A stretch of 63,025 nt of DNA, counting the filler, from Lenisia limosa (Eukaryota; Protista; Breviatea), in NCBI GenBank assembly GCA_001655205.1. It is 11 parts of 11 records of this genome, joined end to end, with 100 filler letters (N's around TTAATTAATTAA, not from the genome) between each part and the next. Parts side by side here need not be neighbours in the genome. Positions count along the whole stretch, not along the records: positions 58,787 to 61,619 come from LPNZ01004215.1; 10 more parts are not named here. The stretch is one strand, 5' to 3'. Position 1 is the first letter of the stretch, and every line of letters begins with the position of its first letter. The position numbers and the translations under genes are program-made. Of the stretch, positions 2,665 through 61,619 are shown piece after piece. A model generated the notes under the pieces. That model ran no database searches. It was not told the origin of the DNA and saw only the letters and a list, made by a program, of their open reading frames with translations.

Positions 2665-20665
<18,001 letters not shown>

Positions 20666-58785: not shown

Positions 58786-61619
58786 NTAGTGGGCAGCTTG
58801 TTGTCGAAAATGTCCTGCCAAGGTAACACAAAGCTGAAAAGAAGGTTCCAATTGAGGCTCGGACGAGAATTACTTGGACTCCGCACAAATAATTTAAGTG
58901 AGTCATATTGTGATGAGAACGTAATTTCAGCCACTGTACTTTCAAATTTTGGCAACCAATCCTCAAAAAATTAACTGCACGGGGTCGGTTATTATTGCCC
59001 ATTGAATGCCCACAGCTCTCTTGGCTAGAAGATCGATGGTGTTGATGGCGACTTGGCGCACGGACTGGTCTGGATCGGATGACAAGCATGCGGCCGGCTC
59101 CACGCACTGAGGGGGGGGGGAGAGTAAAATTAGAAAATGGATGAAACAAAAACAAAAACAAAAAAAGCCCAAATCGACTCTGTTGGCTGACAGCACACGG
59201 CTGATAACAACAAAACAAACAAAGCCAGGCCAGTCGCGTCTGCAGCACCGCATCACTCCAGCGTACAGGGTGGGGTAAGGATTGGGGGTGACGGGGTGAG
59301 ATAGAGTGAAACACAAAATTGACTTTAACTATATCTCAGAGCTCATATGCAAAATTGACCCCAACTGAATCACGTGTATCAGAGCTTATTAACACCTGTC
59401 GCTCACATTGGGAGGGAAGAGCATGCCTTCACGATGAGCGATGTAGATGAGCCGAATAGCCTCCAACCGGACCTATAGCAGTGAATACAGGCAAAAGTAC
59501 CGGCATATTAAAAGCATGAGTTGGTAAGAGGACTTCACTCCGGTCGTAAAAAAAAGACCGGTGAAATATTATTTCTCGAGGATTTAATGAGAATTTAGAC
59601 TTTTTTATCGGATTGAAGTGAAGCCACAGTTGGTAAACAGAAGAGTTGCAAGTAGCCTGTCACCTTAGAATCCCTGTATGGCCAACCTTAGAATCCCTAT
59701 GGGCACACGCCTTGACAACAAGGTCGAAATTGTCCCTCACGACGCCGTCCACAATGGAGTCTTCGTGTCCAGACGCGGCAATTTCAGCCTGGCTGATGTT
59801 TTTGGTTGCTGGGGGGGGGGGGGTAAANNNNNNNNNNNNNNNNNNNNNNNNNNNNNNNNNNNNNNNNNNNNNNNNNNNNNNNNNNNNNNNNNNNNNNNNN
59901 NNNNNNNNNNTGGCTGACGACACACGAGGGTTGATAACATCAAAACAAACAAAGCCCAGCCAGTCGCTTCTGAAGCAACGCATCTCGTGAACATGAAAAA
60001 AGAAGCAAACCTACATCCCTTAGTAAAGATCTCTTATATCCCTCATATCTAGTAGGGCTTCCCCACTGTCCGAAAAAAGACCGTCAAAATATCGAAAATA
60101 TTCGAGGATTTAACGACAGATTCACCCATACCAACAACATCCTCTTTTAGCCTTTATTCCAACAACACTCCTCTTTTAGCCCTGATGCCAACAACACTCC
60201 TCTTATAGCCCTCATACCGACAGCGGTCTTCTGTCGGCGTATCACAGCCCTTTGGTTGTTTTCAATAAAGCGTGACAGGGACAACAACAACGCACGCTAG
60301 ATGGTCAGAACGCTATGAAACTGTACTTTGCTGGAAGTGGCAGTATTTCGAGTTAGATGCAGTATTTCGAGGTTTACTTGTAATATATCGCATATTTCAA
60401 GAATTAGTTGATAAGTCCCTCTCAATGCCCACCTGGACCTCAGCGGTGCTAGAGAGACAGGCCTCAATTGCAGCCTTGGCTGGTGGCTGGTTCAGCAGCA
60501 GGGGTTGGAGGTAGGCTGAGGAGCAGAGCGATTTCACAGCGCTGGGAGGGGGGGGATGAAGAATGGACAACTTTTGAAACAGAATAAAAGACAATCAACT
60601 TTTTTAAGCAAAACAAAAAGAGCTGAGATGAGGATGCAATTAAAGAAGGCCGGGTAAACTTGCCAGTGGCGTACTGAGATTTAATGGATTCGTTGGGATG
60701 TCTGACATAGGGCAAAATGGCGGCAAAAGTGCGAGCCGTTACCTCAGCCTGAAGAAGGGGGGGGAGTTAAATTGGATTTAAATTTATGAAACAAAAAAAA
60801 AGCCCGAAATCAACTCTGTTGGATGANNNNNNNNNNNNNNNNNNNNNNNNNNNNNNNNNNNNNNNNNNNNNNNNNNNNNNNNNNNNNNNNNNNNNNNNNN
60901 NNNNNNNNGTATTATTTAGGCTTCTTATTTCAAACTTGACAGACTCCCTGCAATTTTTTTTTGAGGAAATCTATTGCCAAAATTTGAAACTAAAGTGGCT
61001 GGCTGAATAACGTTCTCGTTAAAATATGACTCACTTGAAATTTTGAAATTAATTTCTCAATTATTTGCAGTCCTACTTGAAACCCCAGCTCTAAGCCTAC
61101 GAATGGAAGGGCATGTGACACGACCCCATCGTCCTCTTGAATGCGAAGGTTTGAGGCTTGCGAAAAATCCAACTCGGAGACAAGATGGGAAGCCGTGAGT
61201 AATGACCTGAGATGTCAGAAAAAAACTGATGGTAAAAGTGGCCTTGCTTCAACTTGCCCCATATGGTAAGCTATCTTTCCACATTTGGTAAGTCAAGGCC
61301 AACCTGAGAATGCGGCCTGCGATGGCGGGGTTTTTCAAATCCTTGCTTTTGGCCAGGGTGATGAGAGAGTCTAAAAAGTCAAGCTCGTACATTTGCTGGT
61401 AGTGCAATGATTGAAATGACCCAATTGAATAAGTCTAAACCCTCCAGAAAAATTATCACAGATCTATTTGTGATTTATCCAAGACAGTTACTGGGTGACA
61501 CCCTTATATCAGTCTAAACCCCCCAGACTTGTGAAGAGATGGAGCACCCTGCGAGCGCCTCGGTAGTTGTTGCTTTGCGCCACAACGCGCGCGAAACACA
61601 GCGACGTCGACCGGATAAG
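58786..61619 (-). CDS. NIPBL: NIPBL/Scc2 cohesin loader, C-terminal HEAT fragment
   Basis: ILRSLLTASHLVSELDF and VVRDNFDLVVKACAHRDSKVRLEAIRLIYIAHREGMLFPPNCVEPAACLSSDPDQSVRQVA align by eye, ungapped in the latter part, with NIPBL 'LLRSLFTVGALCRHFDF' and 'FFHTQSSVRHFALNVIALTLNQGLIHPVQCVPYLIAMGTDPEPAMR'. Confidence 0.8.
59107..59250 (-). mobile_element. Family A element, full-length reference copy, forming an acceptor in NIPBL
   Basis: cggtgctgcagacgcgactggcctggctttgtttg...gtcagccaacagagtcgatttgggc...aattttactctcccccccccctcAG before CVEPAAC. Further NIPBL copies at 59809-59984, 60542-60602 (diverged) and 60749-60826. Confidence 0.9.
59528..59628. mobile_element. Family D hAT-type MITE with perfect 8-bp target duplication
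   Basis: gttggtaa|GAGGACTTCAC...GTGAAGCCACA|gttggtaa. Confidence 0.88.
60132..60212. repeat. Minisatellite, 3 units of ccaacaacactcctcttttagcc
   Basis: Direct repeats visible in a NIPBL intron. Confidence 0.85.

Follow-up and report, generated by a model that had tools for sequence, protein, structure and literature searches.

Short interspersed elements (SINEs) and other non-autonomous non-LTR retroposons, such as the Alu/L1 pair, spread by target-primed reverse transcription and insert into the tails of older copies. Non-LTR retrotransposons of the R4/Dong type target microsatellites; they are autonomous, carry their own endonuclease and reverse transcriptase and are not tied to splice sites. 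In the case of Alu, the antisense poly-U creates new exons, which are mostly alternative.

Bursts of intron gain are currently explained mainly by introners, intron-generating transposable elements described in Micromonas, Aureococcus, dinoflagellates and fungi (Gozashti et al. 2022, PMC9860276; 2025, PMC12130899). Introners can bring one splice site and take the other from the target, and for about 72% of the 1,093 catalogued families a transposition mechanism was not assignable (PMC9860276; PMC12130899). A preprint from the Ares lab (PMC10996645) deals with intron transposition through excised intron RNA, involving reverse splicing and circular intron RNAs.

Here we analyze a repeat, Family A, in a window of 63,025 nucleotides (filler included) from Lenisia limosa, composed of 11 joined parts of assembly GCA_001655205.1, concentrating on the piece derived from record LPNZ01004215.1 (positions 58,787 to 61,619). 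Family A adds to the introners a different behaviour, in that introns already in place seem to be sought out at their pyrimidine tracts, where the repeat overwrites branch point and tract. The pattern of its copies suggests that it spreads by copying that starts at its tail and enters C-rich intron ends, an unusual way for a mobile element to remodel splice sites.

Family A in a minus-strand HEAT-repeat gene

The minus strand of the piece carries a gene in which four introns end in Family A (Table 1). Together with the copies in related contigs, this confirmed the proposal of a sequence-only reading of the window that the repeat forms the 3' end of unrelated introns. The label NIPBL given to the gene in that reading is backed only by a weak Pfam HEAT match (E 0.003).

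Each of the four acceptors named in the same reading (59107, 59809, 60542 and 60749) coincides with the G of an AG. An RNA contig (run X2, record 8) joins 60296-60218, 59808-59687, 59472-59407 and 59106-59016, and the joins at 59106 and 59808 show that 59107 and 59809 are the acceptors used, exactly as had been claimed. The same contig revealed two small exons, 60296-60218 and 59472-59407, missed in the earlier exon set. The support for acceptor 60542 is the unbroken reading frame across the predicted junction, and at 60749 the RNA depth was about 0 and the frame to the upstream exon could not be closed.

Copy 1 makes up the 3' half of intron 59406-59107, where it is inserted directly behind the C-rich end (59268-59300) of about 140 nt of older intron. 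The donor in use is GTGAGCG at 59406, and the GTACG belonging to the copy is unused. Copy 2 starts near consensus position 15-20. Intron 60674-60542 appears to be a whole copy: it opens with GTACGCC, continues through ...GTTGATTG...TTTCAAAAGTTGTCCA... and closes with C8TCCCAG, and its global alignment to the consensus gave z = 6.9 against shuffles, whereas the other introns of the gene gave values below 0. Copy 4 ends in C8 TTCTTCAG and is cut upstream by an N gap (60827-60908). Since intron 59473-59686 lacks a C-run, a C-tract is not universal among the introns of this gene.

Table 1. Features of the HEAT-repeat gene, in coordinates of the window.
Feature	Position	Strand	Evidence
Family A copy 1, full length	59107..59266	-	Sequence; nhmmer E about 1e-40; acceptor used in RNA contig
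Parts of copy 1	GTACG 59266-59262; TTTTAC 59129-59124; C10 59120-59111; TCAG to 59107, AG 59108-59107	-	
Older 5' half of intron 59406-59107, not Family A	59267..59406	-	RNA contig joins 59407 to 59106
Family A copy 2, 3' end of intron 60217-59809	59809..59988	-	nhmmer; acceptor 59809 used in RNA contig
Parts of copy 2	5' part 59988-59911; N gap 59910-59828; TTTAC + C12 + AG 59827-59809	-	
Intron apparently wholly one diverged Family A copy (copy 3)	60542..60674	-	Global alignment; frame continuous; no RNA coverage
Family A copy 4, 3' part only	60749..60826	-	nhmmer; predicted acceptor 60749
Exon downstream of copy 1, HEAT-repeat protein	59014..59106	-	RNA contig covers 59016-59106; weak Pfam HEAT
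Exon downstream of copy 2	59687..59808	-	RNA contig; continuous ORF
Small exon	59407..59472	-	RNA contig
Small exon	60218..60296	-	RNA contig
Control intron, no Family A and no C-run, ends ...ctatag	59473..59686	-	RNA contig; no nhmmer match
Second intron, no Family A and no C-run, ends ...ccatctag	60297..60432	-	RNA contig acceptor; frame-inferred donor

Anatomy of the repeat

The full unit of Family A has about 155-165 nt. It is some 25 nt longer than the earlier consensus, so that the previous estimate of ~140 nt must be extended in the 5' direction as far as GTAYG. This donor-like motif is the 5' terminus of full-length copies, and the 3' terminus consists of a branch-point-like TTTTAC followed by a C-run of 4-24 nt. 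The earlier description of a 3' cassette holds insofar as the repeat supplies introns with their 3' part, but it overlooked the 5' splice-site motif at the head of full-length copies, so that Family A is not only such a cassette. In at least nine copies the first base is precisely the G of GTACG, their upstream flanks being unrelated.

Two size forms were observed, a short one of about 155 nt and a long one of about 300-365 nt, the latter with an extra linker and an "E" module. The TTTTAC-C(n) end is common to the long form and to Family E, both of which also occur in 5'-truncated form, and the copies containing E alone are long forms truncated at the 5' end. Partial tandem copies are found at L009:7927/8017, L011:19425/19525 and L007:5-292 in the related contigs.

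Terminal inverted repeats (TIRs) were not found: a repeat search of the piece gave no inverted pair for Family A, and alignment by eye of its 5' end (GTACGCTGGAGTG...) with the reverse complement of its 3' end gave an imperfect match of at most 6-7 nt. Poly-A is likewise absent, the tail base being C. The description of the repeat as lacking TIRs and poly-A and ending at or just before a functional AG was borne out. An Rfam scan of the piece with E values up to 1 matched zero families, indicating that the piece contains no tRNA, 7SL, 5S, hammerhead or group II signal, and inspection of Family A by eye gave no convincing Pol III A/B boxes.

Several known element types were compared with this anatomy. 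A Helitron has 5' TC ... CTRR 3' ends, a subterminal hairpin and an A/T insertion site, whereas Family A has the ends GTACG... and ...TTTTAC-C(n) and no significant fold. A structured RNA is not indicated, as a full-length copy folded no more stably than its shuffles (z = +1.2). The hammerhead motif of a Penelope-like element or retrozyme was not found in the Rfam scan of the piece, and Family A showed neither the TIRs nor the fixed-length target duplication of a TIR DNA transposon or MITE.

Abundance and sample of copies

The summed read depth of the DNA run was about 100,000 over the Family A core against about 30 in single-copy flanks, a ratio of about 3,000 that serves as a rough indicator only. 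Mapping of reads on Family A alone was affected by the low-complexity filter, which masked 59085-59173. At least 523 called ORFs carry a translation of Family A. The genome contains hundreds to thousands of copies, well beyond chance.

To these data a sample of individual copies was added from related contigs (about 137 kb) of the same public assembly as the piece. In about 140 kb, nhmmer gave 66 matches, of which 59 came from the piece together with 126 kb of related contigs and 7 from another two contigs. The host genes include a HEAT-repeat gene (in the window), a D-lactate-dehydrogenase-like gene (contig L002), an ankyrin gene (L005) and an EGF-laminin gene (L008). In a comparison of exons with protein clusters, a V-ATPase c exon lay closest to clusters in which Streptophyta predominate, a weak hint as to the organism, and the D-LDH exon was uninformative. 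The contigs had been located by means of ORFs running through sense copies, which biases both the density of copies and the orientation of the seeds; for this reason only non-seed copies were counted for orientation. The median identity to the consensus of the 59 measured copies was only 89%, indicating that Family A is not very young.

Scans for exact matches to two patterns in JGI metagenome contigs, and also in IMG/VR viral contigs, gave 0 matches, and so provided no evidence that Family A occurs elsewhere or has a viral vector. Literature searches for the element sequence gave nothing relevant, and this sequence is absent from the supplements of the 2022 introner paper. As separate observations, Family A causes assembly gaps, is the source of hundreds of spurious "proteins" listed in metagenomic catalogues, and flags a public bacterial MAG as contaminated with eukaryotic sequence.

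Truncation, tail and orientation

The copies are anchored at their 3' end: 48/59 reach the TTTTAC end, while 42/59 are truncated at the 5' end with breakpoints scattered from position 10 to position 113. The remaining 11/59 are 3'-truncated, and at least 3 of these are cut by the end of a contig or by a gap. In 16/44 copies no base separates the C-run from the first AG, and in 33/44 the distance is at most 7 nt, the AG usually being part of YAG; in 17/44 copies 1-8 nt of resident YAG sequence separate the C-run from the AG. Copies lacking a tail also occur in the middle of introns.

Non-seed copies had the orientation of the seed of the same contig in 38 cases and the opposite one in 6. Four of these six lie where called ORFs occupy that other strand, and the only one whose context was examined, in L009, is an antisense fragment with G-runs on both sides. 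In four genes whose strand is independently known every copy is sense. Further evidence of acceptor use comes from L002, where Pfam-collinear FAD-oxidase_C exons begin directly after C13-AG (1743) and 40 nt after a copy (2762), and from L005, where an ankyrin exon begins directly after the copy at 2677. The counts of truncation and orientation agree with the earlier description of the repeat as sense-oriented, 3'-anchored and variably 5'-truncated.

Most copies form the 3' part of larger introns. An arrangement like that of intron 59406-59107 was found at L005:248-493, where the real donor is borne by an older stretch of intron and is followed by an intact copy that has a GTAYG of its own.

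Apparent insertion target

A C-tract was present at the 5' junction of 19/57 copies, compared with 4.3% of random positions on the same strand (p = 1.3e-12), and such preceding tracts were found for full and truncated copies alike. C-tracts thus bound copies on both sides. At L013:5347, L011:10313 and L005:54 the junction is exactly TTTTAC followed by the new copy. Runs of C or G of at least 6 nt, at about 1.5 per kb, are some nine times as frequent as expected by chance.

A 13-nt target duplication, CCCAGGAGCTGAG, flanks a 5'-truncated copy in L002 (520-532 and 628-640) and covers the old AG plus 8 exon bases. In a scan of the paired flanks of 42 copies the mean longest match was 4.1 nt against 4.25 nt in the shuffled-pair control; the 13-nt match was the one exception, and it is borderline, about 0.07 such cases being expected by chance among 42 copies. 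Elsewhere the two flanks share only C-runs, which are indistinguishable from the tail, and duplications consisting only of C would be invisible. In L004 an antisense piece (3077-3105) is followed by a sense 3' part (3106-3150), resembling a 5' inversion by twin priming.

Proposed mechanism

We propose, with roughly an even chance of being right, that Family A is a non-autonomous, SINE-like retroposon with an oligo-C tail that enters intronic C-tracts and takes over the acceptor region. Synthesis of a copy would start at the 3' tail and proceed inwards, the most likely process being target-primed reverse transcription with an RNA as template, and most copies would for that reason be 5'-truncated. 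Priming would occur at a pre-existing C-run of the sense strand, which is a G-run on the other strand. The commonest such target would be an intron's 3'-terminal pyrimidine tract, in many cases provided by the tail of an earlier copy, and the new copy would land at the resident AG or a few bases upstream of it. Insertion would split the old C-tract and make the copy the new branch point and pyrimidine tract of the intron, the AG itself usually being supplied by the target. Such strand-specific targets would lead copies to build up in the sense direction and to stack head-to-tail. We observed the anatomy and abundance of Family A, its sense orientation and 3' anchoring, the flanking C-tracts and the use of two acceptors, and we infer the RNA intermediate, the priming and the enzyme.

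A full-length copy placed beside an exonic AG would yield a complete new intron. Full-length copies are intron-shaped, and new introns may also have been created in this way. Two candidates are available, intron 60674-60542 and L001:8947-9100; the latter was rejected as a clean case of intron creation since its flanks look non-coding.

Several points weigh against this proposal: within about 140 kb of the genome neither a reverse transcriptase nor an autonomous partner was seen, a single long target duplication was found among 42 copies, the oligo-C tail matches no retroposon tail found in literature searches, neither a Pol III-type head nor a known RNA family was detected, and the 3' parts could have been kept through selection.

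If this reading of Family A is true, a large share of the 3' splice regions of one genome would be recent, near-identical insertions. Copying from the tail would moreover allow a retroposon to stay harmless in genes because it lands where it is spliced out, and would offer a route to the genome-wide homogenization of splice-signal sequences.

A bolder form of the proposal, which we consider unlikely, is that what moves is the intron RNA itself after its excision. The 5' end of this RNA would be the G of GTAYG, the first base of the intron, and its tail would begin at TTTTAC. The genomic G-run opposite an intronic C-tract would prime on the C-tail of the RNA, reverse transcription would follow, and introns would in this way spread, by their 3' halves or at times in full, to other introns as well as to exonic C(n)AG sites. 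This would amount to direct genomic evidence of RNA-mediated intron transposition with a preference for homing to 3' splice sites. As the 5' end of Family A is exactly a 5' splice site, the old idea of transposition by intron RNA becomes directly testable in Lenisia limosa.

Alternative explanations

Family A could instead be a non-autonomous DNA element, like most catalogued introners, integrating at C-rich sites without an RNA step, its truncation resulting from abortive or repair-mediated integration. The many introner families with no assigned transposition mechanism leave room for such an element, and the unit, which begins with GTAYG and stops just short of the AG, resembles known introners that bring one splice site and recruit the other; the lack of a reverse transcriptase partner in the ~140 kb also fits. 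On the other hand, Family A lacks TIRs as well as a fixed target duplication, and the predominance of 5' truncation (42/59) over 3' truncation (11/59), the variable homopolymer tail and the 5' inversion are hallmarks of copying from the 3' end and not of cut-and-paste. We consider this explanation unlikely.

Of the two origins offered by the sequence-only reading, insertion at existing 3' splice sites fits the data much better than an aged introner family, the preference being founded on the C-tract junctions, intron 59406-59107 and the duplication in L002. An aged classical introner would have inserted into exons as a whole element, with later decay, internal deletions and upstream insertions, selection keeping the functional 3' part. 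Internal deletions would retain the 5' end of the element itself, whereas truncated copies adjoin unrelated sequence, often a C-run, at many internal positions. Intron 59406-59107 and L005:248-493 each have an intact GTAYG copy behind an older segment bearing the donor, and the 13-nt duplication places an insertion at an existing acceptor. The intron shape of full-length copies, the resemblance of intron 60674-60542 to one whole diverged copy and the modest median identity to the consensus are in line with ageing, but overall this origin is quite improbable.

Partial reverse splicing, the route suggested earlier for insertion at acceptors, was not favoured by the data and is very doubtful. In this process the spliceosome would ligate an excised intron RNA to the 5' end of a downstream exon in another transcript, followed by reverse transcription and recombination into the gene. 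It would explain the exact 5' splice site with which the unit opens, the AG at its 3' end, found directly after the C-run in part of the copies, and the lack of a general target duplication. Not predicted by it are C-runs at the 5' junction, the resident YAG sequence between tail and AG, the duplicated AG with 8 exon bases in L002, the tail-less copies in mid-intron and the antisense fragment between G-runs in L009.

Templated DNA repair, in which fragile C-runs would be repaired from other C-run loci to leave 3'-anchored patches of variable length with no transposition machinery, agrees with the excess of C/G runs and their presence on both sides of copies, but is highly improbable, as copying from a chromosomal donor should continue into the donor flanks, whereas nine or more copies share the exact 5' base with unrelated upstream flanks and the hundreds to thousands of dispersed, near-consensus copies point to a discrete template.

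Comparison with known systems

The retroposon that we propose shares with SINEs the 3' anchoring, the scattered 5' truncation, the variable homopolymer tail and the nested head-to-tail insertion into older tails, as well as one 5' inversion of the twin-priming type; its single, borderline target duplication would be of the variable-length kind. Families A and E have only their 3' end in common, as do SINE families that share a LINE-type tail. Unlike SINEs, Family A has an oligo-C tail in place of an A-rich or microsatellite one, no detected Pol III head (tRNA, 7SL or 5S) and no LINE partner in the ~140 kb; its 5' end coincides with a splice donor, and its copies are almost exclusively sense and intronic. 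As with elements of the R4/Dong type, the apparent target is a simple sequence that matches the tail of the element, so that insertion would recreate the target; a literature search found no description of a poly-C target for such elements. As in the exonization of Alu, a retroposon contributes the polypyrimidine tract used at a 3' splice site, but in Family A it is the sense-strand tail that takes over a constitutive acceptor region, leaving the exon unchanged.

Like introners, Family A is multi-copy, sense-oriented, non-autonomous and located in introns of unrelated genes. Its full unit opens with a donor motif and closes with a branch point and pyrimidine tract, the AG often belonging to the target, and one intron of the piece appears to be a whole copy. 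In contrast to introners, most copies have lost their 5' portion and continue an older intron of unrelated sequence, the C-tracts of existing introns are apparently preferred to exons, and an oligo-C tail is present where TIRs and a fixed target duplication are not. With the transposition of intron RNA (PMC10996645), Family A shares a 5' end that is exactly that of an intron, a tail starting from a branch-point-like motif and head-to-tail junctions lacking an AG; it differs in that the upstream partner at such junctions is often not Family A. The C-runs of the target account for the head-to-tail junctions more simply than lariat or circle templates.

Splice sites of the host gene

The host gene is encoded by the minus strand of the piece (the part of the window studied, about 59-61 kb). 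A poly-A RNA contig from a run that contains this locus joins four of its exons and verifies three GT-AG introns; at one junction an ambiguity of the GT was resolved before the intron ends were assigned. Spliced together with two predicted upstream exons, the RNA-joined exons form a single ORF. The sequence-only reading, whose gene model lacked two small exons, had labelled the gene NIPBL; the last exon gave a weak HEAT-repeat match, and nothing in that label more specific than a HEAT-repeat protein was confirmed. The four acceptors that it had assigned to Family A, a repeat of about 140 nt at the 3' end of introns, are each the G of an AG after the C-run that ends a copy: 59107 and 59809 were proven by the RNA contig, 60542 is supported by reading-frame continuity and 60749 is a predicted acceptor.

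Several repeat families contribute to the introns of this gene, giving them a mosaic make-up. Family B has copies in two different introns, one per orientation, and unlike Family A is not strand-restricted, and block C occurs in one intron with and one without Family A. Extended donor strings are common to unrelated introns, GTTGGCC occurring three times and GTGGGCATT(g/c)A..GGG twice, once at a predicted donor just past the end of the RNA contig; they may correspond, on the 5' side, to the acceptor cassette, or may just reflect which donors are preferred locally.

Coordinates of gene features, Family A and E copies, and other repeats (window positions; related contigs as Lxxx:position)
Feature	Location	Remarks
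RNA-joined exons	60296-60218, 59808-59687, 59472-59407, 59106-59016
Predicted upstream exons	60748-60675, 60541-60433
RNA-verified introns	60217-59809, 59686-59473, 59406-59107	GT-AG
Introns of the gene with neither Family A nor C-run	59686-59473, 60432-60297
Long form	L005:3471-3823, L011:19525-19808	tail-less Family A body, then linker, E, C-run and AG
E-only copies (examples)	L005:3171-3257, L011:19710-19795, L003:4398-4473, L008:9776-9866
Junctions TTTTAC / new copy, exact or after few C	L013:5347, L011:10313, L011:19525, L005:54, L012:11774, L009:11677
Family B	58888-58955, 60974-61044	inverted pair, 82-93% complementary
Block C	59550-59590, 60073-60116	about 40 nt, 85-93% identical
Shared donor strings	61303, 59686 (GTTGGCC); 60432, 59013 (GTGGGCATT); L002:741
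Intronic tandem array	60140-60226	29-nt unit, three times
Intronic tandem array at contig start	L002:1-175	20-nt unit, eight times
Intronic tandem repeats of Family A 5' part	L007:5-154	three of 50 nt, directly before a full copy

Structure and abundance of Family A

Full-length copies open with GTACG or GTATG and continue straight into CTGGAGTGATGGGATGCGG; nine of them start at exactly the G of this donor-like motif, the bases upstream being unrelated. They end in ...CCAATTTTAC(T) and a C-run of 4-24 nt; TTTAC matches the generic branch-point pattern yUnAy. The element has no terminal inverted repeats (TIR), matched no Rfam family and showed an unremarkable RNA fold (z = +1.2). A long form, collinear at two unrelated loci, shares the same 5' 145 nt and continues through a T/G-rich linker into a second repeat module, E (...TTCAGATTATTCGGTT...CATCGAAATTTCCTTCGTTTTAC, then C-run and AG), which has the same TTTTAC-C(n) end. 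Thirteen copies consist of E alone and resemble long forms that have lost their 5' part.

In the DNA run with the locus, summed contig depth was about 100,000 over the repeat core against about 30 in the flanks, indicating that the repeat exceeds chance; as a crude indicator, this depth suggests roughly a thousand copies or more. The element's one open frame was translated and used as bait in a large metagenomic protein catalogue, where it matched 7 called ORFs in a first search and at least 523 in a profile search, all from one public assembly. These at least 523 catalogue entries (P0001-P0122 and about 400 more, with the motif ...GLGFVCFVVINP.VLSANRVDLGFF...) are prokaryote-style ORF calls through Family A and constitute a spurious protein family. 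A profile scan of the piece and 12 of the contigs with these ORFs (126 kb) gave 59 matches in all, the piece's own included, and 7 further copies were obtained in two contigs found by exact DNA pattern. These two, L013 and L014 (CBDLPA010000039.1 and CBDLPA010000069.1) of the same assembly, carry the 7 Family A copies and one E copy and are filed in a public MAG, 'uncultured Colwellia sp.'; they are intron-rich eukaryotic contigs contaminating a bacterial bin.

The consensus of the recovered copies was the same as that of the sequence-only reading, with full-length copies extending about 25 nt further 5', and the contigs were therefore assumed to come from this organism or a very close relative. 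Each of the two N gaps of the piece begins inside a Family A copy beside a C/G run, indicating that the assembly breaks because of the repeat.

Truncation, orientation and insertion sites

Against a 141-nt consensus, 42 of the 59 matches were 5'-truncated, at breakpoints scattered from position 10 to 113, and 48 extended to the 3' end; contig ends or an N gap cut short at least three of the other 11. Two copies (L012:10290 and L012:15140) are truncated at the same internal position with the same 5-nt junction (C-run + ACCC / CTGCAGAAGCG) and unrelated sequence further upstream; the explanation may be a sub-family that has a 5' end of its own, or microhomology.

Among 44 copies, the first AG followed the C-run immediately (0 nt) in 16 and at no more than 7 nt in 33, usually as TCAG, ACAG, GCAG or TAG, the chance expectation being about one position in sixteen. 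Exons defined independently of Family A begin at AGs behind its C-runs: in a D-lactate-dehydrogenase-like gene (L002), where FAD-oxidase_C profile positions are collinear, exons start at 1743 and 2762, and in an ankyrin gene (L005) an ankyrin repeat starts at 2677.

When the copy by which each contig was found was left out, 38 non-seed copies had the orientation of their contig's seed copy and six the opposite one. Of these six, three come from one half of L002, in which every called ORF is on the opposite strand, and one from a part of L012 with minus-strand ORF calls; a fifth is an antisense fragment between G-runs at the 5' end of an intron, and the sixth is L004:177-89. Contigs found by DNA pattern had 5/5 and 2/2 copies in one orientation, and every copy in four genes of independently known strand was sense.

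The most informative result on where copies land is the C-tract at the 5' junction, present directly upstream of 19 of 57 copies, whether complete or truncated, compared with 4.3% of random same-strand positions (p = 1.3e-12). Often this tract was the tail left by an earlier copy of Family A or E; in other cases it was the point where an older, unrelated intron ends in C-rich sequence. In the RNA-verified intron 59406-59107, about 140 nt of older intron with the real donor and a C-rich end precede an intact copy, whose own GTACG is unused, followed by C10 and TCAG; L005:248-493 is arranged in the same way. In L002, a truncated copy lies between perfect 13-nt duplicates (CCCAGGAGCTGAG) consisting of the old acceptor AG and 8 exon bases, with C's before, indicating that this insertion occurred at an existing acceptor and that splicing must now use the downstream AG. 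This single duplication was borderline against the control, and a paired-flank scan revealed no other exceeding a C-run. In another copy, the sense 3' part is immediately preceded by a piece in antisense, an arrangement that twin priming produces. Over all loci, C or G runs of at least 6 occurred about 1.5 times per kb, roughly nine times chance, and half had an AG within 8 nt downstream.

Most sampled copies are 3' parts of larger introns. Intron 60674-60542, however, could be aligned end to end with the consensus, GTACGC through C8TCCCAG (z = 6.9 versus shuffles), whereas the gene's other introns scored below zero. Since the full-length unit is also intron-shaped, the alignment suggests that Family A may create introns as well. 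A clean full-length copy in L001 was rejected as a case of intron creation, the surrounding sequence looking non-coding.

Origin of Family A

Several concordant patterns fit a discrete template copied from its 3' end and primed on a genomic run complementary to its tail. The 3' anchoring, scattered 5' truncation, variable homopolymer tail and nesting into older tails all fit copying from the tail, as do the rare long duplication, the 5' inversion and the sister families having only the tail in common. We infer an RNA intermediate, its priming and the enzyme involved. Given the frequency of C-runs and their proximity to AGs, the element would home to 3' splice regions and accumulate in the sense direction, and a resident AG, or its duplicate, would be left just behind the element's own branch-point-like motif and C-tract; this predicted pattern matches the observations. 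No RT gene was seen in the piece and related contigs, and no precedent for an oligo-C-tailed retroposon was found in the literature.

A DNA introner of unassigned mechanism is unlikely: most catalogued introner families are unclassified, but the truncation asymmetry and the absent TIR and TSD count against cut-and-paste. That the copied template is the excised intron RNA itself, as would be suggested by a 5' end coinciding with the opening base of a splice donor and by a tail starting at a branch-point-like motif, we consider rather unlikely; head-to-tail junctions without AG are compatible with it, although tail-targeting explains them more simply. The repeat is real, abundant and partly RNA-verified. 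The sequence-only reading described it correctly, and of its two interpretations insertion at existing acceptors is favoured. The aged introner of that reading is improbable, leaving unexplained both the truncated copies adjoining C-runs at many internal positions and the intact copies behind older intron segments. The partial reverse splicing that it invoked for insertion is very improbable, as it predicts neither upstream C-runs and resident YAG remnants nor the 13-nt duplication and the G-run-flanked antisense copy. Templated break repair at C-runs, to which we give the least credence, does not account for the many copies whose 5' ends coincide to the base.

Family A behaves like an element of the introner type that, as far as is visible, mainly remodels acceptors, and is of clear interest for work on intron gain and splice-site evolution. 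Copying from the tail would follow the same logic as target-primed reverse transcription and as SINEs nesting in older tails, with a tail of C instead of A.
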